Assembly (NCBI GenBank): GCA_020536535.1
Contig: JAHLWZ010000805.1
Location: forward strand, 62,001-126,000
Length of the DNA: 64,000 nt
Origin: Pelomyxa schiedti
Taxonomy: Eukaryota; Protista; Evosea
Direction of reading: 5' to 3'
Program-made: the position numbers and the translations under genes
Shown here: piece by piece, positions 10,641-60,630 of the stretch
Numbering within the stretch: position 1 is the first letter of the stretch
Layout of the letters: every line of letters starts with the position of its first letter
The notes under the pieces: generated by a model
What the model saw: only the letters and a program-made list of their open reading frames with translations
What the model was told of the DNA's origin: nothing
Database searches by the model: none

Positions 10641-13564
10641 TTACTCTATTCCTTGCATGCGGTTGGATTCTGCAGACTGGCGCTTCTCCAGTACCAGTTG
10701 TAGTGATTTTCGTGTTTGCAAAAATGTGCTTTCTATGACACAGGCCTCTGATTCCAGGAAGGCCGTGCAGGCTGTGAGCTCTTCTCTGTTTGGCTCTGTG
10801 TGGCTGTCACAAAAGTGCAGAGCCTGACACACCATGCTGATTGGTAGGGTTGGGTTGTATGACTTGCATAGGATGAGGAGAGTTTGTGATCGCATGTGTG
10901 GTATCATTTGGTTCATGAGGTATTTCCCGTGGTTGGGCACGGTACCTAAAAGCCTGGGGGTGGAGTTCATTTAGATGACTAGTAAATTAAGTGATAGAAT
11001 GCACCCAAAGTACCTAAAAAACAGGCAGTAGTCATTCAGATTAACAGCTGAGACAACGGACAGTGCGTGAACAACAGCGGGGGCTGACATCAACTGAGGT
11101 GAAAGGTCGGCTATAACCTTGGTCATATCTGTGTATCACTAAGTCAAGGATATAAGGAATGTAAGGCAAACCAGTGGAGGATCTTCTTGAAGCGGTGAAG
11201 AGAACTCGGTAAGCAGCGAACTCCGCTTCATGCTGGCAATGACTAGCATGGACTTGATAGAGGTCAACAAGTTGCATCTGACACTGGTTGAACTCTCCCC
11301 AGTCATTCTGTGGGTGAAAAAAGTTAGATGACTTTTCTTTGCTCTTTGCTACTAACATTTTTCATGGCCAGTCTTGCATGAAGTTCATATACTTTGACGG
11401 TGAATACATTTTGAATATGTTGGACCATCAAGTCCTGTCTGATGCACTTCAGTTGCTCACATATGTAGGTGTAGTCAGGTGTGGAATGTGCGGGTGTTGC
11501 TGTAGATGCTGTTGTGTGGGCAGCGGCTGTTGTGGCAGCACTCCGAAGTTTTTGGAGAATCATTTTAAAGGATTGCTTGAGAACTCCCTCTGGTCGCACA
11601 GATGCGGGGTCAATGTCCTGTAAAGAAATTCACAACTTGTACTTGACATATTACATTATTTTCCAGTTTTATTATTAGTTAGGAGGGGGGAGGATATGTG
11701 GAGTGTAACTGAAGTTGTTCTCAGGTACTGTTTTTCTAAAGACTGTGATGTCCCAACAACCACAGGTGCCTCAGTTACATCATCAAACCCTACCACACCA
11801 CTGGAACTACCACCCCACCCACTTCTATCAATTTGAATTGATGGATGTTTGTCGATATAGAAGCCATTGAATCTGTCTTTGATCTTTGAGGCTGTTGTTG
11901 TTGGTGAATTCTCGGGGTCTGGGTCATCAAAGCCAAACCTCAATTTTCTTTTTTTTCGGCGCTCGGTTTCTTCTGGTGTTTCCCTAAGTTGGCTTAGAAA
12001 AAAAATCTCCTCTGTTGCTGTGAGGCTTACCATTTTTTCTTTTTCGGTTTATCAATTTTATCTTGTTTGGCCAGCTTCTGAAAGGGTTTCATCCCTTTTC
12101 TGCTGAGAAAAGTTTCAATCTTGCTAGGGGAAGGTGATGGCGAAGATGGAGTTGAAGTGGCGGCATCCTGGGAATCAGTTGATTTGGTGCTCCCCGCTTT
12201 CCTACACATTCTTAGTAACCTTTTCCTCAATAAGAATGGTACACACAGTGTAGGTGTAGGCTCTTTGTCCCAATCGCGGGTCCACATGATTTTTTTTGTC
12301 AGAGCATCGGTAATAATGTGTTTGAGCTGAATTTCTGTTTCATTTCGTTGTTCATCAGTAGAACAGGCCTGTTCCAAAGTTAGGAGAATATGGGGAGGCC
12401 TGCAGCCAACCTGGAAACAACGTTCAACGAAAGCACGAAGTTTTGGAGGGAAGTGTTGTGAATCTTCCTTGCTTTCAGTATTTGCTGGTTTTTCTTTTTC
12501 TTTGTCTTTGTCTGGCTTAATCTTTGGTGTTATTGCCACCCTCATCCTGAAGCCCTTTAATAGTAAGGAAAGGCATAAACAAGAAAAAAAAGTCAGATAC
12601 TCACGCAGCCTTGTGTTTTTGCTCAAGTAGCTGTAGTTGGATGGGTGTTAGCTGTGTGTTAGGTTGCTGTAAAACCATCCTAATTGTTTGTTGAGAGAAT
12701 ACATAAGCAAAAGGTGAACCCATACTGGTAATATGGCGAACTTCCGTATGCCCTGATAGAAAAAATAAGAACTAGGGGTTTGTGTTTGGGAAAAAAGAAG
12801 AGGGACCTACTGGTAATAATACGCTTGGAGGGATGCTGTGGCTTGCGCTGGAAACTGTTGTGATCGAGATGCCTGAGATACATCAGGTGTTGCAGGTTGT
12901 GTAACTATTGCAGGTGCGGCAGGAGAAGTATTAGGAAGAGTACTTGGGGAAGGTGTTGTCACATTCTGCGCGGCGTTGGTAGGTGTAGTTACTGCAGGCG
13001 TAGGAGTGGTGGTTTCGCCGCCGGGGGGTGTTTCAGCCGGGGTACCCGTCGAAGCGGCCGGCGTAGGTGATGGCGTGGATGATGTGTGCGTGGTACTAGT
13101 ACTACTACTAGCCGTAGTCGCTTGCTGCGCAGCAGCCCCCCTGCACATACACAGACAAAAGAAATTAGAAAGGTAATATACATGAATAGTGACGAGAGAA
13201 CCAAGGCCAGCCGACCATGGGCTGCTGCTGCTGCGAAACCGCGGCCGCCTGCTGCCCATAGTACCAATTATAGTACGCCGCGTACTGCTGCTGTTGCTGC
13301 TGCTGATACTGCAGTTGCTGCTGGTACTGCGCCGCCATCGCGGCCGTCGCGGGGCTCGCCGTGGGCGACTGGGCCGGCGAGAGAGGCGCCGCCGTGCTCG
13401 TGGCAGGAGATGTCGCAGCCGCAGTCGCCGGCGCCGCTGCGGGGGTCACTCCCTGCACCATTGGTCTCTGTTGCTGTTGCTGCTGTTGTGCGTAGGCTGC
13501 CCAGTACATGTTTTGTTGTTGCTGTTGAAACTGTTGCTGTTGTTGTTGTAGCTGGAGCTGCTGT

Positions 13565-13596
<32 letters not shown>

Positions 13597-13737
13597 TTGC
13601 TGTTGTTGTTGTTGGAGCTGTTGGGCGAAACCGTACCGAGAGGTGGTGGTGCCTATCGTGAAAGAAACACGGGTGGGTGGTGGTGGTTGCTGCGCGACGG
13701 GTGCCGCGGCAGCCGAAGTTGTCGCCACAGGTTGCAT
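10641..13737 (-). CDS. LENG8: SAC3/GANP-domain protein, LENG8/Thp3 type, with Gln/Ala/Pro-rich N-terminus
   Basis: [95 protein letters not shown]. The start codon is tentative. Confidence 0.85.
13513..13623 (-). repeat. CAG/CAA trinucleotide repeat encoding a poly-Gln tract in the LENG8-like gene
   Basis: Long (gtt/gct)n run on the + strand; translates as QQLQQQQ...QQFQQQQQ on the minus strand. Confidence 0.95.
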
Positions 13738-14875
13738 CACTTTGTATTGTATGTTTTGTTTTTTTTTCTTTTCTTTTCTTTCTTTTTCTTCTGATCTACA
13801 AGTAGATCAGCGGTTCTTTGGACCGACCGTACTCGTGGGCGCAGAGTACATGGTAAGGGTGGCACTTGCAGGTTCTGGCAGTGTCCGAGACTGCAAGGAT
13901 GTAGATCCTGTTGATCACAATAACGAAAAAGGCAGGACCAAAGAAAAAAACGGTACAGGCTTTAAAAGCGACACCATCAGAAATGCGTCACTTGCATATG
14001 TTGGGGACAGTTGTTGGGAGGGATGTTGATGTAAACGTAGTAGTAGCGAAGACTCTGTGACGTAGGAACAACAGTGTTATGGCAATTAACATTACTGAAT
14101 CGTTGATCAAGTATCAACGTTCTTGCAATGAGAGATCCAGCTAACAATTTACAGGTATTTATGACATGTCCTTTCTTTCTTTTTTTTTTATGATGAAGGA
14201 CATGGAATACAGGAGTTGGGATATAACTGTAGTTTCATCCAGTGTTTCTAAGGTCTAAACGTGCAGTTCCCATTGGCAATGTACTAACAAATCTTTAGAA
14301 TCCCCGATTTTTTCCCTTCTCAACTGTACCCCTCCAGCCAGCATTGTCCTGTGGCAAATACGTACACATTTTATTGGCAAACCTGGATTTATGGTACCCG
14401 TACTCCATAACTGGCGCCAAATGGGAGGTTCTTGTCACTACACAGTGTTGTGGGAGGTAGAGAGACTGCCCTCTACTGCACCACTTGACAAAACACTGAC
14501 GTTAGATAGTCAGTGTTTTAGTGTGTAGGCTTCAGGGAATGTAAGCAGTGATGGAAAGACTTTTGTTGTGTAAACGAATTTAAGAAATGCCCAGTTGTGG
14601 GCTTACCCCCTCCTCACACACCCTCTCTCACTCTCAACACTTGATGGAAGAAAACAAAGACCCAGCGTTGCAACACCAAGTTTTTTCCCCAATCAAAAAC
14701 TTTTTTAGTCTGTTCATGAACCCCAGCTTCTGAGCCCTGCCCCTTCCTTCTTGAGAGGAGTTGTAGCGAGGGTGTGGTGAAGTGCTGGCGCTGCTGCCAG
14801 TGATCCACCCACAATCACATGCGTGCAACCACCCTCCTCCGTGGTTTTGCGATAAAGTAGCCAAAAACAATATTT

Positions 14876-18176: not shown

Positions 18177-18672
18177 CCGGCTCTTTCTGTTTGGTTTCCC
18201 CACCCCCAAAGCATCGTGTTTCCAGTTATTCGGCGCCGAGAGGACGAAAAAAAAAAATAAAAGTGAAGAACAAAGTATGGGAGGAATTACGTGGCGCCAT
18301 TGGGAAGAAGTGGGAAGTCGACATCGTCAGAGGCGGAAGGAGATGCCTTCATCAGTGTGTCGTTCTAGTTTGTTTTGGGGAATACTGTTTTTCATAATAA
18401 TTTTGGTCCTTCGTCGAAGATCTCACTGCAGAAGCACTTCTGATTTCGAAATCCCAGACCACGGGGGTTGGAGTACGCACATCTGTACGTTGAGGATTGT
18501 CCCTGGGCATTGTTGCAACCGCAGTACCTTTTTTCCGGAAACAACCTGCAGGATCCATTAGTTGAAAATCTCGTTGTCCTCCATTGAACACCCAACAAAA
18601 AGAAAAAATAAGTAACCAAAAAAACCATCTTCAATGTTGCTACTGGCTAGCTGTTGGTGTGCCTTCCTCATT

Positions 18673-21600
18673 ATGGGAGACCACGCCGTGTCCCACCGGC
18701 GTACCGCCACGTCTTTATCTCCCGCCTTCCTCAGTCTTTATCTCCTCGCCGCGCTCGTCCTCTCCGTTTCCTTCTCGTCTGCGGCGACCTGCTCCATCGG
18801 CGGGGCGCTTTCCGTGAACGCGACGGTCGGCGACCAATCGACGTCGGCCGCAGTCGCGTGCGGCGTGCCGATCGGCGACTTCGCCGACGGGGTTTCGTCG
18901 GGAATCGCGGTCGGCGACGAAGACGACGGCTCCGTGCTTTTCAGCTGGTACGTCTCGCCCCACGAGTCCTCGGTCTCGGCCTACGGCGTCGTGGACTGTG
19001 ACTTGGCCAGATCTCTTGCCCCGCCGTACAGTGCCACGTGGGTCACAAGCTCGCCGGAATCGCTGGTCGGGCTTACTATTATGGGACTGAATGCCAGCGG
19101 AATAGCGCCGGTCGACGGCTGCGATGACCCCGGAAATTTTACCGTTTCATTCGACTGCTCGGCTGACGTCCTGTTCCAGTTCAAGATAACATTCGCTTTC
19201 ACGGAATTAGATGCAACTGCTACTACCGCTTCTGTTTCCACTTCTTCTTCGTTATCTGATGTAGTTTTTCCTGATGTATCAATCACTACTTTTGTGTTCA
19301 ATTGGCAATGCACAGAGCCAGGCTGCACGACCTACTGTGCCGAACACGGCACTTGCCACTATGCAATGGGTGTGTGTGAATGCAACGAAGGGTGGCTTGG
19401 GGATTCATGTGGTGTGATGTTTGTAAGGGACCCTCCTGGATCAACTTATTGCCCGGACGATTCCATTCAAGTGACCTGGGATATTCCGTGAGTCTTCACC
19501 CTCCTTTTACTATTACATGATGACATAGAACTACTCCTTATTGCATTTTAGGGCTTCTATATATGGGCAAGATGGGGCTGTGAATGGAATGTGGTACGGC
19601 ACAACTTACACAACATCCTATGTATACACGGAAGTGGTTTATTTTATAGGGTGGGGAAGCATAAAAGCTGATGATAGTACACCGGGTTACGGTGAGGAAT
19701 CCACAGGGACAAACTACATGATGGGCTACTATTCTCCTGGGACTGTGCGCCTAAAAATTGGAAGTGACACAACAAGTACATTATATTGGACAGAACTCCT
19801 GGAAATACTTAGCTGGGAGGATTGTGGCTATAATTCGACATGTGGAGATGATACCAGCAACACCTGCGGTGAAGAAAGCGGTTGGGGACAGTGCAATAAC
19901 GGTGTTTGTGAATGCAACAGTGGTCATTACTGGTATGACTGTTCGAGAGGTTGTGACGCAATGACGGTCTTGACGGGCAACAATGGCGTTTTTGAAAGTG
20001 ATTCGAATTACAAGCCACAACGAATGCATTACATCACAGCTGTAGAGTGCTGGTGGGATATTCATCCAACCGAGGATTATGATGACATCGAGTTTGGAAT
20101 TCCTTTGTTTGATCTAGCATTTGATGACTACGTCAACTTCTATGCTGTTGATGAGTACGGAAATTATTCTGAACCTGAAGTTACAATGTATGGAGACAGT
20201 GACATCCAAACTGTAAAAATGACCTCAAAGCGAGTGTTTGTGCAGTTTGTTTCCAACATCCAAAACACTCGTGTTGGTTTCAGCCTAAACTACACCACTA
20301 CTGTAGTCCCTCTCCCTGGGTGGGCGTATTTCTTGATGGCTATGGGAGGAGCAATTGTCATTGCTATAGTTGCTATTATTAGCGCTGTGAGAGTCAGCTA
20401 TGTTATGAAACAAAGACAGATTCGAAGAGAACAAGCACTTAACATGCCACCAGAAATCCTTCCTTACGATAAGGAAGCCGAGATAAAACTCAAGTATATT
20501 GCGCCAGATCCAAATCTTCTGGCCAGCCAGCTGGAAGAATTTGGTGTTCAGCTAGCGAAGTTGTCATTCAATTTTAATTTGGCATCTTCTGACGCTTTCC
20601 CGGTAAACCAAGTTATGAATGAAGACATATGGATAGCAAACCTGGCTACACATAACCTCAAATTCTGTTTCTACATTCCTGAGACGTTAGCAGGAAAGTT
20701 CGCAATAAGGCCAGGGCAAGGTGTAATATCACCTGGTAAAGTTACCGAAATCAAGATCGAATTCACGCTCCTGTACACAACCCACTTCTCGCACTGTATA
20801 AACCTCGAGCTAAGCTTCAAGGATGAATCAATGACTGTTCCTTTCATTCTTGACTTGGAAGGCGCAGTCTCTGACAGACTGGATCCTGAAGAGTTTGAAA
20901 ACTATCAAGTTATGGCTGAAGGAACATATAGGTATCTCAAAACTTATGTAATTGTACCTGATGGAAATACACAGTACTGTCTTCAAAGTTACGTACCGCT
21001 CCCAACCTCTTGCGGTGAAAGTGCTGAAACAGCAAGATGAAGAGGCTAAAAAGAGTTTTGAAAAGGAATGTATGCTGCTGCAACAAATAAGACATCGATA
21101 TATAGTGTCTTTTGTTGGTGCTTCCTGGGTACCAGGTTAATATTCCTCTATTTTCCCAAAGTGACTTGAATATAGGAAAATACAGTATTTGCACTGAACT
21201 TCTAGAGAAGGGCTCGATTAAGAAGTTCCTTCATGATGAAAAGAATGTTGTATCATATCCTCTTATCCTAAAATTTGCAAGCAATGTTGCCGAGGCCATG
21301 GCCTACCTTCACAGCAATAAAATTCTGTATAGTACGTCTCTACTGACAACATTTATCCACAATTCTAACGCGAACTCAGGAGACTTGAAATGCGCCAATA
21401 TACTTCTTGTTTCAACAGCAATAAATGCTCCCGTTAACTGCAAACTGACAGGTAGACTAGTTTAAAATTTGAATTTTCCTAATTTGGCCAAGATTTTGGC
21501 ACATCCCGAGCTGTCGACGATGCAGATACCCCTGCAAATCACACACATGGTTTGGGAACTCCCATTTTTATGGTTGAACATCTCCTCTAAGCTTGGTGGG

Positions 21601-39173: not shown

Positions 39174-39306
39174 TTATGAGGTTTCTGAGCTCCCCAGTCC
39201 CACTTACAGGGGATTTGATCGATCGTTTTTTCGCCCCCCTCAGTTGCACCGGCCACAATCACACTAATTACGATCTGTTGTAGACCATACACCCTACGTA
39301 GTAGCC

Positions 39307-42300
39307 ATGTTTCGGAAACTAAGGACAGGAGACGCCGCCGACGCGGGCGGGAACACCGCGGGGCTCTGGAAGATAGTCAAGAAGCGCAAGTGCTCGCGCT
39401 GCGGCTCGGACGACCACGAGGCCCACGCGTGCACGCTCCCGTGGTCCGCCGCCCGCAAGCAGCGCGACCGCGCCATGTTCGAGGCCCGGCAGACCGACTG
39501 GCGGGCCCACACCATAACCACCCTCTCCGCCGCCAAGGCCGGCGGGGCCCGCGCCGTCGCCGCGGCCGCCTCGTCCACGGGCGGCCGGGGGGCCAGCGGG
39601 GGAGGGGCCGCCCGCCGGGAGCAAGAGGAGGAGGAGGGGGAGGAGGCTGCCGAGGGGGGCGGCTCCAGGCCGGCGCCGCGCTGCCTGCGGTGCAACGAGC
39701 TGGGGCACTGGGCGTGGAAGTGCCCGCTGGTGAGGCAGCAGGCGACCAAGAAGCAGACGTGGCGCTGCGCCCTGTGCCACGCCACCGGCCACAGCGCGGA
39801 CGAGTGCACGGTGACCGCGCTGCGCAAGGCCGCCAAGGGCGGCGAGCGCGCCCTCGCCGAGTTCAGGCAGAAGCAGGCCCTCGCCGAGGAGCAGGCCAGG
39901 AAAAAGACAGCCGCCGAGGACGGCTTGGTGGAGAAAATTATTATGTCTTCTGCTGCTGCTGCTGCTGCGCAGGCCAAGTCTCAGCCTCAGGCACAGGAAA
40001 CTACGCAGGAGCAGGCACAGGCACCGAAGAAAGGTAAAAAGGGCAAAAAGGAGCAGCTGTGCCGGAGTTGCGGGAAACCAGGGCACATATCGAGGGACTG
40101 CTTGGAGGCTGCATTGAAGGCTTCCACTCCTGCTGCTTCCGAGAGCGGCGAGCCTGGTGCGCGTCAGGATGCTCAGAACGAGTTCCAGCTTCCGCAGAAC
40201 CAATGGGGCAACATTGGTGGCAAGGGATGGGGGTGGACCGGAAAGTTCTGCACCAGGTGCAACCAATTTGGCCACTCTAGCAGTGCCTGCCTTGGTGGAA
40301 AGTTGCTGGACAGATTCGAGGTTTCTCACCTGAAAAGCAGGATCGAGGCTGAATGCCCTCCAAAGGGGGTATCCTAATGCCCAAAACATATTCCTGCACT
40401 CATTTTTACATAGATAAACCCTCTTTTGTATGAAGCCGAAACTATTGTGTCTACTGGAGAGGTTTACTTTCCTCGGGCAACAACATTTATGGAAATGCCT
40501 CTGTCTATGAAAACCCAAATAGGTCAGTACTTCCCCAGTAGTAAGTACATGTCTCACACTTCTCAGCACTTGCTGAATACAACTACGTCGTCATGACCCC
40601 AATTCAACGGGCCTCTCTTCCTCATTCCTTGGCTGGGAGGGATATTCTCGGTGCTGCAAAAACAGGTACTCATTCAGCCTGCCCACTGGGGGTAATTATT
40701 GATAGGCTCTGGTAAAACTCTTGCTTTTGTCATACCACTTCTTGAAACTCTGTTTCGCATACACTGGAACCAAACTGATGGACTAGGTGCATTAATCCTT
40801 GCCCCAACTCGAGAACTTGTATGTAATTTATTCTTTCAACAGGAAATTCTAACCGTTGAGTAGGCTACACAAACAAACAACATCGTGCGCCGTGTAGGAC
40901 GCCGTCACACATTTAACTCAGGCTGCCTTATTGGTGGAAGTGCGGGATATCGTTATGAAAATGCCTTTGTTTCCTCTGTCGCTATTCTGACTGCTACTCC
41001 TGGAAGAATATTGCACCACCTTGAAGCTGCATATGGATTGACCCCCCAAAATTTAAAATTCCTTGGTGTGCTGCCTTCACTTTTATTAAAATATTAAGTC
41101 AAAAATTCACAGACCTCTACAAAACATACAGTTATCGACGAGTGTGACTTGATGCTCGACATGGGATTTGCTCAGCAGCTCAATTCTATTTTATCACATA
41201 TACCAAAAAGCCGTCAGACTTTATTGTTCTCTGCTACTCAGACAAAATCTTTGAGAGACATTGCTCGTGTTAGTCTTAATGTACGGTACATAACATTGTC
41301 ATACCCTATAACAAGTCTCCAGGAACCTGAATATATTTCTGTTGATGAAACGTCTTCCTCTCGGACACCTGACAAATTACAACAAATTGCCGTTTTCGTG
41401 GAGTTTCATAAGAAGTTCAACACGTTTGCTGATTTTGCCAAACGGCACTCTGATATGAAAATGCTACTATTTGTAGCAACATGCAAGCAAGTACGTAGAA
41501 ATAGCAAAACCGAAACGTGCACTTATCTTTCTCAGGCTAAATACTTTTCTGCCTTGTCAAGTAAGATAAAGGCTGTTTCCAGCAGCTTTTGTCTCACCAG
41601 CAAACTCAACCAAGAGAAACGGCTCGATGTTATATATGAATTTGGCAAGAAAACCAAAGGTAGCTCACAATTTTTCCCCAGTCCTACTCCCAAATCCTAG
41701 GCGTTCTGTGGACTACAGAATTGGCTGCTCGTGGACTGGATATTACAGGAGTTGATTGGATCATTAATTTTGATTGCCCAGACACTGTGGAATCCTACAT
41801 TCATAGAGTTGGAAGAACAGCACGGTAATTCTTCCTACCAATTACCACCTTACCCAATGGATATAAAGGTACACAGCATCTGGCCAAGCCATGCTATTCC
41901 TTTCTCCAAAAGAGTCCCTATTTTTGGATAAACTTGTCGAAGCTCAAGTTCCAATTCAGACAGTTCATATAAACCCAACCAAGCAATCTGACATTAAGGA
42001 ACTAATAATTTCGTGCTGCATGCAGCATCACGGGTTCGCAAAGATGGCGAAGAGTGTATCTTTCAACATTATGTTAGAGCTATCTCAACAATACCTAGGC
42101 TTACACTGCATATGTCCGATCACTCTACATGCGCTACCACAAAACATTTTTCTCCACAATAAACTTGCACGATTTGGCTGCAAGTATGGGGTTACCTGAT
42201 CCTCCTACCATCAGCCTTGAAGATGTAATCTGCAACTACCCACTACCTCTCCCTGGGTGCTTACTTTGATTTAGGTATTATCTAAAAAGCCTAAAAATGA

Positions 42301-43439
42301 GACAAGGCAGGAGCAAATCAACATAAACTTACTTGAACCTACAGCACCAAAGGCATTTCCCAGTGCTTCTTTACCCCAAAAACAATTAACAAATTCAAAA
42401 AAAGGAAACAAGTCGCAAACGCCCCAAAGCTACGTCTTCATGTGCCCCACAATACTTCATGGGGGAGTGGGAAGACCCCGAGATTCTAAAGGCACAACCC
42501 ACTCAGGCTAAACCTCGTGCCCGTCCACTCCTACAACCACGAGCTGCTATTGGAGAGTTATCGTTTGAAGCCGGAGGCCTTTTGAAACCCTCCACCACGC
42601 CAGACCCCATTCTACCGAACCTTGGGCAGGTATTTGGAAACAGGAAGAGGCCACCCAAGGAATTCGAAGGGAAGCACATACTCCTAAGTAAGTACTTACT
42701 TCCATTACCAACAAATAAAATCGAAACAAACAAAACAAAACACAAAACCAAACATTCCACAGATGAGCCAACAGTTGGAGAGGAGGAGGAAGAAGATGGC
42801 ATCGGGAAGTCTGCGCCCGAGTCAGAACACTTGGACCCCGCGAACGACCTTCTCGTGCAGTTCTTCCAGCACGGCACAGTGACCGCGCCCGACTCATCGT
42901 CGTCGAGAAAGGCCGCCGCCGCCGCCGCCGCACGGGACGGGCTCGGCAAGGTCTCCACGCCCCGAGGAGGGGAATCGGCAGCAGAGAGCGGCCAAGGCGA
43001 AGGCGGAGGCGCGGGGCCGAGGACCGTGGAGCAGGACATGCTGTCGTTCTACGCCAGGATACGGGCGCAGATCGACGACGAGGACACGGAGGACAAGGGC
43101 AGGGAGAGGGAGCACCTGCGGCAGCAGCGGCTCAAGCGCAAGCTCAAGAGGGAGGGCAAGACCCTGTTCGGCAAGGACGACGTGGACGACACCGCCGTAG
43201 CTGGCAACGTGATCATCCGAGACGAAGGAGAACAAGGTGGAGAAGCAGAAGAAGAATCATCTGCCAGAGTCAACGCAGGAGACTACGACGTGGTCGTGGA
43301 GCCGCTGTCTGCTGACCTGGAACCAGAAGCTACTACTACGACTACTTCTACAACGAGGTCCTCTTCTGCGTCCACGGCAACAAAGGACAGTGACTGGGAG
43401 TATGAGTGGGAAGAAAAAGATGCAAGTGAGTACCATTGA
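39307..43439 (+). CDS. DDX10: DEAD-box helicase of DDX10/Dbp4 type with five N-terminal CCHC zinc knuckles and an acidic tail
   Basis: [28 protein letters not shown]|[65 protein letters not shown]. The 3' end may include one more short exon to about 43525. Confidence 0.85.
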
Positions 43440-43605: not shown

Positions 43606-45541
43606 CTAAGAGCCCAGTGTGCTCTCCTGGAATGAAAACCTGTTTTTGGGGTCAGCAAACACCAAAAAAAGAATGTAACTTGGGGATGTACCCAACAAAT
43701 TGGTTTTGATCGGTAGCCTGTAAAACGACCGGTTTGTCATCAACGGAATCGCCTGTCTGTTTTGTGGGTTGGTAAAATCGTTTTTGTACGGGAGGGAAAA
43801 TTCATAGACATACTGCTTGAGATGTAAAAGTCTCATCAATTTGGCTGACATCGGATGTTGTGTCTTTTATTGGAGGTTTCCATGGTGGAGTAAGGCTGCG
43901 GTGGTACAAGGCATCCCAATCCATTCCAGCAAACCAAGGATGGGCTCTCACTTGCTTAGCAGAAAACCGTTTTTCTGGGTCTTGTTGCAGTAGCTTGGGG
44001 GAAAAAAGTCTAAGTGATAATTTGTTGTGGGTGCATTATTACCCCAGCAAGCAGAGATCTCGCGTCAGGAGTAACTTCAGAGGGATACTTAATATCGCCT
44101 GAGAGTATCCTCTGATACATTTGTGCATGATTGGGATTGTAGAACGGTGGCTTTTTAGTTGATACTGGCGTTAGATTTCTGTGAATAGAAAAAGGAAATT
44201 ACTAATCCAGTAAGCATTTCAAAAATGAGTGTTCCCAAACTCCACCAATCTACAGGAGTTCCGTGCGGCTTCCCTTTCAGAACTTCCGGCGCTGTTTGGA
44301 GGTTTAACTTGTTGTGTTATCACTTTTAATGTAAACCAAGATATTCTGGAGTCCCACAAAAAGTGCTGGTTCCCGCTGTTGTTTGCAGTTGTTTGGACAA
44401 ACCAAAATCGGTTATTCTGATTTCACCTGCGTTGAATGAGATTTGGGGAAGAAGGAGTCAAAAGGGGCTAAACCCTGGAAATCTATGAGAATATCTGCAC
44501 AGTAAAATGTTTAGAATGGCAAACGAATTAGAAACTTCAGCACATACTTTCTGGTTTCAAATCTCTGAGTACCGATTACATTGAAATTAGTGGTTGCATA
44601 GAGACAAATAACCATACCTGTAGACAATTCCCAGTGCGTGCAAGTGCTCCAGAGCAAGAGCGATTTCTCCAGCATACATCTTCACCCTTGGTTCCTCGAA
44701 TTTGTTATCGTTCTTCAGATGGTAGAACAATTCTCCGCCATTGACAAAGTCCATGACCATATACAGTTTTTCTGGAGTCTACTTGAACAATTAAGTTGGG
44801 GAAAAAAAAAAGGAATGATACCTGAAATGCGTAATGTAATTTGACAATGAAAGGGTGCTCAATTTGTTGCATGATAACTTTCTCAGACAGTGTGTGTGCA
44901 ACCTTCACGATTGAGTAAGTCTCAGTTGTAAGCTTCCTATTTACCTGTTTTCTAGCAATGATTGCACTTTTCTTAAGAACTTTCATAGCGTAGATTTGAT
45001 GATCATCTTTCTTTTCAACACGAAGCACCTAAAGGCGGGGTTAATTTCGGTGCACAGAAGCAAAGAAAAAGAACCTTTCCAAAGCTGCCCCGTCCAATTA
45101 AAGTCAGAATCTAACCAGAAAAGGAATTGTCAGAAAGGAAAACGAATGAAAGTTCCAACCACACACCGTGAAGTCTTCCTTGGTAACTTTCTGAGAAGTC
45201 TTGCTGAACAACATTCCAGCAGGTTTGTCTCCTAGAATCTGATCCAGCGGCCCGTACTCCGACTCATCATAACCGTGCAAGTCGCCATCAGACGACGCGG
45301 TAGTTGCAGCGGCCGACGCAGTGCTCGTTGACGACGTCGTAGTGGCGGAAGCCGTAGGCGTCGCCGCCGGGTCGGCTGGCGTCGCAGCGGCGCCGTCGGC
45401 AGATGCGGCGCCCTTTTTGCCCTTCTTGGGCTTCTTGTCGCCCTTCTTCTTGCCGCCCTTTGTCGGTGTTGCTGCTGTTGGCGCTGTTGCGTCTACTGGT
45501 CCCCCTTTGTTCTTCCCCTTGTGGTGTTGTGCGTTACCCAT
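43606..45541 (-). CDS. AGC kinase (Akt/SGK family, PH-less, PkbR1-like N-myristoylated type)
   Basis: [14 protein letters not shown] start; KVTKEDF; [13 protein letters not shown]; [13 protein letters not shown]; [17 protein letters not shown]; [11 protein letters not shown]; hydrophobic motif QFVG|FSF near the C-terminus. Confidence 0.9.
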
Positions 45542-45952: not shown

Positions 45953-47686
45953 ATGCAAGACATACTGGACGCGACGGGGGCGGCAGTGAAAGGTACATTC
46001 AATCAATCTCGTGCTACAAGTGACTGTGCCTTTACTCTGTTTTTTCACTGTATTTTGACCCTCTGTACCTTTTTTTTTTTGTTTGCAAGCCAACAAACAC
46101 AAAACCAAAAAGGAGTTGTCAATGTTATTTCCTCGGTTACCCACACGAGCGGCGCCGATTCTTCTTCTCCCACAAGTAGTCCTTCCACAGAAGAGCGCAG
46201 CCGCGACATAAGGATGTGCGCAACCGACCTCGAAAACTCTGACGGGAGGCTCCAAGAGCTAATTGTGGCCACGAAGCAGTTCGAGGTCCTCCTGGTCAAG
46301 ACCCAGAAGGAAGGATTCGCCAAGATCGCCCAGATGGAAAAGGAGTACATGACATACCTCCAGACTCAGTTCAAGACCGTCACACTGCAATTCGACGCCG
46401 CGGTCAAAAAGCAGGCCGCGGAAGCCGCGAAGCAGCGCGAGAATCTCGAGCGCGTTCGCGCCGTCGTCCACGCGTCCGCCGCGACGGCCGCGGCGATCTC
46501 GGCCCCGACGTGCGACGACGCGGCCGCCGACGAGGGCCTCAAGAACCTCAGGGCCGCGTTGGTGGAGTCAAAGTCCATCGACGTGATCAAATCCGCTGAG
46601 ATGCTGCAGTCCCTGCCGCAAATCGTCACGCCGTCGAAGCCTGGTGAGGACTGGGTCAAGGCCATCAAAGATTTGGGGACTATAGCCAACGTCACGAGGA
46701 CAATCACGATCACGAACCGGCGCGGCGTCACCGTGCAGCAGATACTAGATTCAGTCCCTCAGCCTTGCGATCTTCCGGCTGGGAACCCTGACACCCACGA
46801 CGGCGGCGCCTGCTTCGACGCCGTGAGGAGGCAGGTCTTCTCCGTGCACGGAAACGTCAATTATGGGAGGGACGTTTTCGTATTATCTCTGGCCGACAAT
46901 TCCTGCCAGCACCTTCCGGATTTGGTACCGTTCTCCACTCATGGGCAGTATCCAGTCTGGGACCATGGCAACTTTGTTTATGTATTCGAGTGTGAGAGTG
47001 GAACATTCAACAGATGGGGCCGAATCAACTGTACCACTTTCGCATTTGAGGAGCTACCGTCAGCTAAATTCAGCTTCTGCAGGTTCTGCCAGTTTGTAGT
47101 CGATCCAACGAGGAGGGGCCTGCTGGTGATTGACAACGCGTTTTTCTTGCGCGAGTGTAACCTGGATACTTTGCAGTGGAGCGACAAGATTGGCAAAACA
47201 TCACCCTTTGATGGAGAGGGCAAAGGCTTGTCATACTCTTTTGGTGCCGCCAGTCTCCTTGGGTGCTGGGGGCCTGGCTGTTTCCAAGTGAGTGCCATAT
47301 ATGGGAAAAGTGAACTTGCCGGTAAAATGGCTACCGTCGCGGTGACAAAAACTGGTGGTTCAGGCAAGCCCGCTGAATATTCAGTCGCCATAAATAACCT
47401 CCCTGGCATGGAGTCTGTTGGAACGTATAATATTACCCGCTGCAGAGTCACTACAGCGATTCCGGGCCTCCGAGGCCAGTTCATCCCAATAGTACAGGGA
47501 ATTGCTTCTGACAGGAAATTCTATATCTGGGATCCCGAACAGAAGGCGGACAAGAAACTGTGGACACCCCTCTCATGGACCAGCACAAATGACGGTGCTC
47601 ACACCTTCTGGGATGAGGACACAGGCCGTTTCTACTTCCAGACCAACGGCCAAAATACTTGGAATTTTGTGCAACTTAGGGTGTGA
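45953..47686 (+). CDS. Coiled-coil plus beta-propeller-like (kelch/NHL-like) hypothetical protein; long uninterrupted ORF
   Basis: 577-codon open frame; helical heptad region (LQELIVATKQFEV..AAKQRENLERVR) followed by repeated beta-strand motifs (ACFDAVRRQVFSVHG, PVWDHGNFVYVFE, TFWDEDTGRFYFQ). One small 5' intron is possible. Confidence 0.6.
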   Translation: MQDILDATGAAVKGTFNQSRATSDCAFTLFFHCILTLCTFFFLFASQQTQNQKGVVNVISSVTHTSGADSSSPTSSPSTEERSRDIRMCATDLENSDGRLQELIVATKQFEVLLVKTQKEGFAKIAQMEKEYMTYLQTQFKTVTLQFDAAVKKQAAEAAKQRENLERVRAVVHASAATAAAISAPTCDDAAADEGLKNLRAALVESKSIDVIKSAEMLQSLPQIVTPSKPGEDWVKAIKDLGTIANVTRTITITNRRGVTVQQILDSVPQPCDLPAGNPDTHDGGACFDAVRRQVFSVHGNVNYGRDVFVLSLADNSCQHLPDLVPFSTHGQYPVWDHGNFVYVFECESGTFNRWGRINCTTFAFEELPSAKFSFCRFCQFVVDPTRRGLLVIDNAFFLRECNLDTLQWSDKIGKTSPFDGEGKGLSYSFGAASLLGCWGPGCFQVSAIYGKSELAGKMATVAVTKTGGSGKPAEYSVAINNLPGMESVGTYNITRCRVTTAIPGLRGQFIPIVQGIASDRKFYIWDPEQKADKKLWTPLSWTSTNDGAHTFWDEDTGRFYFQTNGQNTWNFVQLRV

Positions 47687-47855: not shown

Positions 47856-48909
47856 TTACCTTCTTGTGTTGACAGTTGTGTTGGTGCCCGTTTCCTCTGA
47901 AAATACAAAAGTTAAATCATCACAAAGGGCGGAAATGCAAACCTCACAAGGTACCCATTTGAATAAAGTGAGATGGCCACATTTGACCCAACGTCTTTCC
48001 CACTGTAATTCCGTAAACATAAATTTAAATCATCACACCCCACCCCACCCCGGTCTATGAAGTAGTCGTTGCACACACCCTTTGGATAGAGATAGCTTTT
48101 GTTCCGTCGCCAGCCGGGTGGTATTCCACATCAAGAATCCCAGCCGAAATAGGTTCCTCAATGGAATTAGGCACTATACACAGCGGCGCTGCATCGTTGC
48201 CGTTATTATGGGTGTTGTTGTGGCTGCTGCTATTCACATTGGCTACATGTGCTAATGCCAGTGGTGGAGTGCGAGTAGTGCTTAAACTACATTGTGGGGA
48301 GACGGCATTAGCCGGTTGCTGTTGCTGCGTTGATGAACTTGTGTTCGTGGGCGTGGTGGTCGTTGACAATGGGCTCCCTCGCGGCGTCTGTTTGTTTGAT
48401 GCTCGTTTTGCTGCTGCTGCGGCTGCTGTTGCTGCTACTTTTATTAATACAGGCTGTGATGGATTCGGGACTGCAGAGGAATGTGTATCATCCACAACAC
48501 AGGTCTCCTCACCACTACTGTTACCACTGCTGCCTTTAGTTTTGGTTGTGCGTATGCTGATTTTGCTGTTGCTGTTTATAACACTATTAGTACAGCTTTG
48601 CGGGCGTCCCCCCTGCTGCAGTTGCTTTTCACATTTCGCAATCACGTCGCATCGCGGCAATTGCTGGCATTGCAACTGAGACGGCGAGTGCGATTGCGAT
48701 TGAGATGGAGATTGGGATTGAGGCTGAGGCTGCTGTCGCCTGTAGCGCTTTGTCGCGGGCTCCCTGGGCGTGATTGCGTCGGGCAGCCCGAGTCGGCGAC
48801 TTGGGGGCGCAGACGCCGCCGCGTTGGTTGCGGCGGGGGGAACGTGCTGGAGCACGAGTTTGGCGGCGGCTCCCCCGTGTATGACGACGTGGGCGTGGCC
48901 AGACGACAT
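47856..48909 (-). CDS. Low-complexity protein with a C-terminal BCL7-like motif
   Basis: The phase-0 splice after KAISIQR joins to WERRWVKCGHLTLFKWVP (exon 48002-47948), resembling BCL7 [20 protein letters not shown]. Confidence 0.55.
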
Positions 48910-49243
48910 AAATAGTGGGCGACGAGAGGGTGGGTGGGTGGGGCGCTCGCGTGTGTTATGGGGTTTGGTATTGGCGTTGGTATTGGCGGGCAACGGAGGG
49001 CAGTGCGTTTGTTTAATAAATATGCCACACTCGGACGTTGGTGCAACGACGTCTGGAGGGACGATTTGATTGGAATTGGAATCAGAAAATCATCATCTGT
49101 ATCAGGAGTGGGATCTCCTTTCCAGGCAGCACGAGTCACACGCCCTCGGGTGCATTGACCATCTCCCTTCGAGAGAACCTGCAGCGAGATCCCTCCCCAT
49201 TCATCCAATCTAGAGAGTTGCGCCCCCCATACTCAGTTGTGGA

Positions 49244-59100: not shown

Positions 59101-60335
59101 TCAGTAAACAAAAAGACCAATATAACCACGAAAAAAGAGAGAGAGGAGAAGAGCAAGCAAACCCAGATGTTTCAGTTCGTCTGCTAGTTCATCCCGCTCT
59201 TTTATGGCTGCTTCAAGTTTTTCTTGCAATTCCTCTAGTTCACTGTTATCACTTCATTGATGTAAGTCGAAATCGGGACGCTGGAAGGCACACATTGTGG
59301 GTGCGGAACTGGGAGTCGGAGTAGGAGTAGGAGTGGCGGGAGGGGGAGTAGAGGTTCCTACTTGCTCTTCTTCATCCTCAGGCTCGCCTTCCCTGAAGTG
59401 TATAAGAACTTAATGAAGAAGGGAGGTCTTTGAGAGAAGGTCTGGTGGGAGATTTACTTGGCAACACCCATATTTGTGTCATTTATTACCACCTGGAAGT
59501 ATTATGTTACGTGAAGTTAAGAACTCCGGGTAATACATTGAGGGTTATAGGAGCACCCTTAGAAGACTTGGACATTACTAGTTGTTTGTTTATTGTTCCA
59601 GGCACATCTGCAAAATCTGCAAAGTTCAATTCTGTCTCCCCAAGAGTTGAAGCCTTGATCTTGCGTTCCTTTGGGAATTGAATTAGACAAAACTAGCCAA
59701 GCTCCTCTTAATCCAGTAAGTGTGTCAAACACAGTAACATGCTCCATACAAAGATAAAACCTATAAGTACAGAAAAGTGGCACTCAAAATAGGGGAGGTG
59801 TTTACAAATTCACTGGCTGTATGAAGATATTTTTTGTGGGATTCAATTATTTAAAGAGTGGCGTAGGATGGCATTTGGCATTTTATTTTGGCCAGACACA
59901 CACCTCAGCCACAGACACGTGGAGTGACTTCTCGTTGAATTTTCCCGTAGAACTGTCGCGAAACAGCGTGATGATGAAGTTGACCTGGTGGTTCCACTCA
60001 GCCGAGCCGCGCGTGACCGGGCACGGCACCGTGTGCGAGCGGTCCTTGAGGGCGAGGCCGCGTCGCCATTTCACGATCGCCGGGGCGCCGTCCGAAAGAG
60101 GAAGGTTCTTGGCGAGGACGAAAGTGATCGAGAACTTGTGCTTCCAGCCGACGCGACCGAGGCCGAAAAGCCCGGTCGTGGCGACCCCAGAGGTCGATGT
60201 CGACGCCGAAGTGTTCACGGTGTTGCCGATGAGGCCGCCGCTCCCGCTGGCCATTTCGAGAATCGAGGCGGTTGGGCTGGGACTGGTGTTGCCTGAGTCC
60301 CTCAGGGTGGCTGGGTTGCCTCTGTTCTTCCTCAT
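53170..60335 (-). CDS. NT-C2 domain + very long coiled coil + C-terminal Dilute (DIL) domain protein (headless myosin-V-tail-like)
   Basis: NT-C2: AIVKWRRG..AEWNHQVNFIITLFRD..FNEKSL..LNFADFA; a single exon of about 4.3 kb (54658-58974 frame) of heptads; DIL: QVYYWINARVFNHIITHPELC|TCNIGFQVKLSLSQLED..CKQAASVLML..LSPSQVATLVVHFRPD. The 3' end is uncertain. Confidence 0.8.
57643..58104 (-). repeat. Coding tandem repeat: about seven 63-bp (21-aa) units, including a near-identical 189-bp duplication (57664-57852 / 57853-58041)
   Basis: ESKRMGEELSQLKSVLEGEKV-ESKKVVEELSQVHTLLEQEKA-NSKTMGEELSSTKVALDTEKA occurs twice; matching DNA words are offset by exactly 189 nt (e.g. 57662 and 57851). Confidence 0.9.
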
Positions 60336-60630
60336 GCTTGGTGTGGTGCGATTATGGGAAGGCTAGTTGCTGGCAGCTGGTTGTTGTACTCTCTTGGTTT
60401 TCCAATCGGTGGGTGAGGCCGAAATTACCACTCGCAGGGAACTGCTGCCTCGAGGGTTTTTTTTTTGTTTTGTTTGTTGCTTCGTTTCGCCGAAGACTGT
60501 GTTTGTCATTTCAACAAATGGTGGAAAGTAAAACAATAGAGAAATCACTTTCGTTTCTCTCTTTTTTCTTTCTTTCTTCACGCAAGAGATACAAAGTGGA
60601 ATGCGGAGGCAAAGTAACAATAAACTGTGC

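Follow-up and report, generated by a model that had tools for sequence, protein, structure and literature searches.

DEAD-box helicases of the DDX10/Dbp4 family act early in the assembly of the 40S ribosomal subunit, being needed for the release of the small nucleolar RNA (snoRNA) U14 in yeast and of U3 in mouse embryonic stem cells, and they work with Bfr2/Enp2 and with Efg1-Bud22 (PMC3950691, PMC10783500, PMC11603299). CCHC zinc knuckles bind single-stranded or loop RNA, and among the DEAD-box helicases they are known for the invertebrate homologues of Vasa (2026 review, PMC12787238). Here we describe a locus of the amoeba Pelomyxa schiedti that carries both elements side by side, located in a window of 64,000 nucleotides (nt) (GenBank assembly GCA_020536535.1, contig JAHLWZ010000805.1, positions 62,001 to 126,000) that consists of eukaryotic DNA with many short introns. 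All coordinates below are those of the window and refer to its forward (+) strand unless stated otherwise. We consider it probable that one gene at approximately 39307–43439 (+), with at least 14 exons, encodes a protein of ~1,150 amino acids, namely a DDX10/Dbp4-type helicase preceded by a tail of ~335 residues that contains five knuckles.

The same order of parts is found in Vasa/DDX4 and in the GLH proteins of C. elegans, in which an array of CX2CX4HX4C knuckles, set in an N-terminal tail of low complexity, comes before the DEAD-box helicase. These proteins belong to the DDX4 clade and to germ granules, whereas the helicase described here falls into the DDX10 clade and the implied process is nucleolar maturation of 18S ribosomal RNA (rRNA). 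As both clade and implied process differ, the resemblance appears to be convergent, and the locus would provide a second, independent knuckle array on a DEAD-box helicase, in an architecture otherwise reported for Vasa/GLH. DDX41/Abstrakt also combines a DEAD-box helicase with a CCHC knuckle in the same polypeptide, but it has a single, C-terminal knuckle and belongs to another clade. In the TRAMP complex, Air1/Air2 use five CCHC knuckles and work with the helicase Mtr4 on nuclear/nucleolar RNA. However, Air1/Air2 is a separate and compact protein acting in trans with a Ski2-type helicase, whereas the knuckles described here are spread along 300 residues and stand in cis to a DEAD-box core, to which they are fused; Pfam scans of the knuckle-bearing reading frame and of the exon pieces gave no match to the Air2-specific model. 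With DDX10/Dbp4 (Hca4) itself the P. schiedti protein shares the core motifs, the long charged C-terminal tail, an N-terminal motif with F..lPlS and the Q motif behind it and, by prediction, the CTE_SPB4 extension. It differs in having the ~335-residue tail with five knuckles in place of the 20–100 basic residues that precede this motif in relatives, and in reading DECD and TS where relatives as a rule have DEAD and HG.

The knuckles are encoded by an open reading frame (ORF), hereafter ORF1, of 356 codons (39307–40377), which starts at the first ATG downstream of a stop at 39265–67 and continues without interruption. Its first 354 codons form exon 1 (39307–40368), comprising an N-terminal extension, the knuckles and, at the very end, the opening half of the N-terminal motif of Dbp4. 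An earlier note on this DNA had read five CX2CX4HX4C knuckles in the first exon of a DDX10/Dbp4-type helicase, and on both counts we agree with it. All five knuckles lie in a single frame, at 39391–39432, 39682–39723, 39766–39807, 40060–40101 and 40249–40290 (knuckles 1–5), and the six-frame translation of the whole window contains no other match to the pattern. By chance a mean of only 0.0006 knuckles per ORF would be expected (20,000 shuffles of ORF1), and 15 of the 16 cysteines of ORF1 sit within knuckles. The Pfam model zf-CCHC (PF00098) matches the whole of ORF1 with 42.7 bits against a cut-off of 20.8 (E 4.5e-11), zinc binding being predicted from the sequence. Between the knuckles are low-complexity linkers of Ala, Gly, Glu and Lys. 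AlphaFold run without an alignment predicts the exon 1 tail to be mostly disordered (mean predicted local distance difference test score, pLDDT, 51), with helices at residues 47–79, 169–214 and 340–349, in a model that we regard as uninformative. ORF1 is overlapped by antisense ORFs of 416 and 227 amino acids and by an ORF in frame +2; these have no Pfam match and were rejected as coding.

As predicted from its exons, the downstream helicase is a member of the DDX10/Dbp4 orthogroup. Sequence searches were run with single exons or stop-free pieces. A stop-free helicase piece of 188 amino acids, compared by phmmer with 1.84 billion representatives, found DDX10/DBP4 proteins as its top matches, among them those of Mastigella eilhardi (a pelomyxid; 58% identity), Mastigamoeba balamuthi, Entamoeba ('DBP4') and Acanthamoeba ('ddx10'). 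In the PDB, exon 5 matches the N-domain of human DDX10 best (2pl3, E 1.7e-8, vs 3e-4 for HAS1/DDX18), and for exons 6–8 DDX18 scores slightly better than DDX10, of which the PDB holds the N-domain only. Exon 11 reaches 25.9 bits with PF13959 (CTE_SPB4/DUF4217; E 9.9e-6, profile positions 11–52), just short of the cut-off of 27 bits, and covers this part of the profile only, as an intron splits the domain and the exons were scanned one by one. The core does not belong to the DDX4/PL10 clade, since Vasa (PDB 2db3) gives E 3.7e-4 with the same piece for which DDX18/DDX10 give 4e-16 to 2e-14, and in the PDB search DDX41 domains score much lower than DDX10/DDX18. The exon pieces are matched by Pfam DEAD and Helicase_C, and motifs Q, I (GSGKT), Ia (PTRELA), Ib (TPGR), II (DECD), III (SAT), V (ARGxD) and VI (HRVGRTAR) follow each other in order across exons 3–9. 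Motif II, however, reads DECD (41137–41148) where 233 of the 236 retrieved DDX10-family proteins have DEAD, and TS stands in front of QxxR (41590–41620), where 'HG' is usual, so that the predicted helicase core is intact but derived.

The evidence that joins the two parts comes from the region in front of the helicase core. A motif shared by non-animal DDX10 orthologs, E-[IV]-x2-L-x2-R-I-x2-E-x-P-x2-G-x-N-P-L, lies 35–60 residues before the F..lPlS/Q-motif region; the earlier note had described a PPxGxNPL segment at this place, and comparison with real orthologs shows this to be correct. In P. schiedti this motif is split exactly at a putative intron, intron 1 (40369–40413), with its first half in the last 17 residues of exon 1 (40318–40368) and its second half (INPLL...) at the start of exon 2 (40414–40522), which continues with the spacer and the Phe upstream of the Q motif. 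Since tblastn of orthologs against the window is blind to such a short N-terminal motif, we drew on 31 orthologs to build a motif profile of 64 positions and ran it over the six-frame translation of the window, 2394 segments in all. The two best matches were exon 2 (E 9.5e-4 at profile positions 22–64) and the last part of ORF1 (E 0.024 at positions 4–21), the next match having E 0.72, and the profile coordinates of the two abut. With shorter motif profiles the end of ORF1 was the best match, and when MAFFT was given the two pieces as separate rows, it placed them end to end on the motif columns, without gap or overlap. Intron 1, placed by homology on both of its sides, is a phase-0 intron of 45 nt (GTATCC...CATAG, GC content 0.36) and resembles the ten introns that follow (GT-AG, 40–66 nt). 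If it were retained, in-frame stops at 40375 (TAA) and 40411 would be read, and the product would be a stand-alone knuckle protein of 356 amino acids.

Translation starts constrain the joined frame further. The only methionines of ORF1 are at positions 1, 57 and 213, the last of which (Met213, 39943–39945) is followed by no further in-frame ATG in exon 1 and thus marks the latest possible start codon. In exon 2 the first ATG is found at 40489, and homology to orthologs begins upstream of it (..YFPRATTF.. vs ..YPDAKRF..), so that exon 2 cannot hold the start codon. The split motif, the lack of an ATG in ORF1 after Met213 and the lack of a usable start in exon 2 together imply that the helicase frame extends into ORF1 far enough to include at least knuckles 4 and 5, which on this reasoning belong to the helicase protein. 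Most probably all five do, to judge from the frame they share: a five-knuckle protein is the most economical reading, because the frame runs on unbroken from knuckles 1–3, where codon periodicity is strongest, to knuckles 4 and 5. In addition, three runs of one sample, each assembled on its own, show contiguous DNA across the junction of ORF1 and helicase. Intron 1, as the earlier note had drawn it to connect the knuckle exon with INPLLY, is therefore a well-supported prediction, as is that note's view that both parts form one protein.

Downstream of exon 2, the helicase core and the C-terminal extension (CTE) are encoded by exons 3 (40567–40665), 4 (40706–40818), 5 (40864–41065), 6 (41132–41280), 7 (41323–41490), 8 (41536–41659), 9 (41701–41824), 10 (41869–42055) and 11 (42099–42224), the last of which holds a putative piece of CTE_SPB4. 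All introns between exons 2 and 11 are GT-AG introns of 40–66 nt, the exons are free of stops, and tblastn with the Mastigella ortholog supports the helicase exons. Exons 12/13 (42275–42687) encode the C-terminal extension and are separated by one intron that lies somewhere between about 42363 and 42506 and for which seven GT-AG solutions keep the frame open. A 3′ intron of 75 nt follows (42688–42762, GTAAGT...CACAG), and then the last exon (42763–43439, stop codon at 43437–39), which encodes an acidic and basic C-terminal tail with a weak tblastn match to ortholog C-termini. In RNA run X1, one contig, which also covers 42647–42687, joins 42687 directly to 42763, and RNA contigs extend over 42763–42994 and 43031–43163. 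Because the 75-nt intron has been removed in this contig, the 3′ part of the helicase gene is transcribed and spliced.

Several observations weigh against a single gene with five knuckles. When the knuckles are scanned one at a time, only knuckle 4, which is canonical, passes the Pfam cut-off of 20.8 (31.6 bits); knuckles 2, 3 and 5 reach 19.4, 14.1 and 16.0 bits, and knuckle 1 is a regular-expression match with no Pfam match of its own. The E-values of the ortholog profile are modest, owing to the shortness of the motif. DNA of 75% GC makes long ORFs cheap, and the antisense strand of ORF1 is open as well. The single-cell RNA run, whose contigs cover 42647–43163 and the neighbouring gene only, has none over exon 1, intron 1 or exon 2, where the splicing of intron 1 and the start of transcription are predictions. 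Word searches with the whole of ORF1 and with residues 240–356, made among proteins of 196–623 amino acids, a size range in which fused relatives would escape notice, found no homologs of ORF1, the whole-ORF1 search being saturated by low-complexity words, and thus gave no sign that the knuckle region is conserved. Finally, the ortholog of Mastigella eilhardi (P0002, EukProt EP01105) is 5′-truncated, its ORF starting at the internal Met of ..VMTPIQ..; its record thus lacks the true N-terminus and says nothing on the age of the tail within Pelomyxidae. Look-alikes in the ESM Atlas were generic zf-CCHC clusters only (scores ≤0.88), metagenome scans found no relative of residues 213–354, and the two distant helicase loci that they did find (35% identity) are both without knuckles. 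Exact-sequence look-ups returned no record for ORF1, for the C-terminal ORF of 326 amino acids or for the Mastigella protein.

A shorter protein is a fairly unlikely alternative to the five-knuckle one. On this explanation the 5′ end of the mRNA falls within ORF1 and Met213 (39943) is where translation starts, so that only knuckles 4 and 5 are translated with the helicase and the very GC-rich part with knuckles 1–3 is a 5′ leader or belongs to a minor isoform. It draws on a sharp change of codon composition at about 39907, on a Lys-rich stretch after Met213 that is like the basic tails of canonical orthologs, and on the Pfam score of knuckle 4 given above. The GC content at third codon positions (GC3) in the ORF1 frame is 0.88–0.98 across the first 600 nt and falls after 39907 from 0.96–0.98 to 0.56–0.66. 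However, it is exactly at knuckles 1–3 that the GC3 periodicity is strongest, and these knuckles continue in frame into knuckles 4 and 5 in a window that has no other knuckle patterns. GC3 rises again, to 0.72–0.96, in the last exon, which is an RNA-supported exon of the helicase gene; as GC-rich islands also recur across the window, a mixed composition is normal for this gene and no argument against its unity. Between run X4 and the window there are two differences in this region, 39951 T>G, synonymous at the third position of the Ser codon after Met213, and 39252 G>C, upstream of the ATG.

The origin of the tail raises a second, quite unlikely explanation that would be compatible with a five-knuckle helicase, namely that knuckles 2 and 3 were captured from the nucleocapsid of a retroelement Gag and turned into a coding exon. 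This pair does resemble the retroviral two-knuckle nucleocapsid unit (PDB 5a9e/2ihx), aligning to that of Rous sarcoma virus Gag with E 2.9e-4, and the likeness could reflect either a retroelement origin or a generic similarity of knuckles. Yet the likeness does not reach beyond the generic knuckle consensus, Pfam finds knuckles only, without a capsid, protease or reverse-transcriptase remnant nearby, and neither related DNA nor further knuckle patterns within the window were found.

Two separate genes, with a stand-alone knuckle protein of 356 amino acids ending at the TAA at 40375 and an independent helicase gene behind it, would agree with the stop that closes ORF1 unless intron 1 is removed, and with the lack of RNA bridging the junction. 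We nonetheless hold this very improbable: a Dbp4-specific motif would then be divided between two genes, the last 17 residues of ORF1 being its first half and the start of exon 2 its second, a helicase start at 40489 would cost the Q-motif region its conserved Phe, and a mere 45 nt would remain for terminator, promoter and start codon. It is just as hard to credit an unrecognised intron within ORF1 by which the motif region would be spliced to another, small first exon, leaving few or no knuckles translated. Out-of-frame ATGs at about 40168–40230 and AG dinucleotides downstream of knuckle 5, ahead of the motif, would allow it, and no RNA contig covers this region; but such an intron would need an unusual GC content or a length far beyond the 40–75 nt of this gene, and five in-frame knuckles would be a coincidence expected 0.0006 times.

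Set against its family, the one-gene protein with five knuckles is unusual. We compared 263 DDX10-family proteins (the best 150 representatives and 113 further ones), a small sample from a family that numbers thousands. The pattern CX2CX3-5HX4C occurs in 0/263 of them, Mastigamoeba and Entamoeba included, and PF00098 is found in none of the 120 family members listed in precomputed Pfam lists; the absence applies to this sample, in which the nearest sequenced relatives are included. Walker A lies at ~424 here, whereas in relatives of full length its position is 108 at the median and at most 182. Among relatives with complete N-termini the nearest, Mastigamoeba balamuthi (769 amino acids) and Entamoeba (694 amino acids), have ordinary basic N-termini. 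Among the papers searched, none linked DDX10 or Dbp4 with zinc knuckles/CCHC, in keeping with the earlier note, to whose author such an array on Dbp4 was not known. The knuckle-bearing DDX10/Dbp4, as predicted here, is a real and lineage-specific variant of a known helicase. Its scope is narrow, in that it concerns one little-studied amoeba and is predicted from sequence at its knuckle end.

By its family membership, the P. schiedti helicase may be inferred to take part in the release of U14/U3 snoRNA and in 18S rRNA maturation. The short basic N-terminal tail usual in the family would have been replaced or expanded to ~335 residues, mostly disordered by prediction, with five dispersed knuckles that could serve as extra modules in cis for binding and chaperoning single-stranded RNA or stem-loops. 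Such a disordered tail might raise the local affinity for pre-rRNA or snoRNA and act as an RNA chaperone beside the helicase core. The knuckles would then anchor or pre-load the helicase on pre-rRNA/snoRNA at the early 90S/small-subunit (SSU) processome step at which Dbp4/DDX10 releases U14 and U3.

The N-terminal tail may be of more general interest, as Dbp4/DDX10 is an essential but poorly understood early small-subunit helicase, and how its RNA substrates (U14, U3 and the 5′ domain of 18S rRNA) are found is an open question. A DDX10/DBP4 relative of 816 amino acids from a JGI metagenome (P0038) has an RG/RGG-rich box at residues 20–50, just before the conserved E-I..L..R-V motif, and is the only full-length relative with at least five RG pairs in its N-terminal tail. 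The position of this box, the same as that of the knuckles, suggests that RNA-binding modules are readily and repeatedly taken up by the tail. The knuckle variant and its RGG-box relative thus point to the tail as a platform for substrate recruitment, and the knuckle variant offers a construct for a direct test of this idea.

With its DECD, its lost HG and its five knuckles, the protein might instead be a diverged copy with a new RNA-targeting role rather than the housekeeping Dbp4, which we regard as improbable. Such a copy could combine a surveillance or chaperone function, like that of Air plus helicase, in one polypeptide, or its knuckles could replace a lost Dbp4 cofactor in an unusual Pelomyxa ribosome assembly. 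A second copy would be compatible with additional, partly matching contigs of the DNA runs. In runs X3 and X4 these contigs match the window at ≥95% at 40594–40897, 42325, 42796, 42929 and 43098 and then continue with unlike flanks; one of them has ...CCTTTAG in place of the sequence upstream of 40594. The loose ends are the same in X3 and X4 and are absent elsewhere in the window. The extra contigs could represent a second, partly diverged DDX10 copy or an allele, or else an amplification chimera of the single-cell libraries.

Islands of 56–79% GC stand out from a background of 40–45% GC at 13201–13800, 18601–19200, 39300–39900, 42750–43200, 46201–46800, 48601–49200 and 60001–60600, and those within the helicase gene coincide with coding low-complexity stretches (GC3 up to 0.98). 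Beyond the helicase gene lies a convergent kinase-like gene at approximately 43800–45030 on the minus strand, whose 3′ end comes to within ~70 nt of the helicase stop codon. Its transcript is represented in RNA run X1 by a contig covering 43506–43640 that continues at 43693, an intron at 43640–43691, GT-AG on the minus strand, having been removed.

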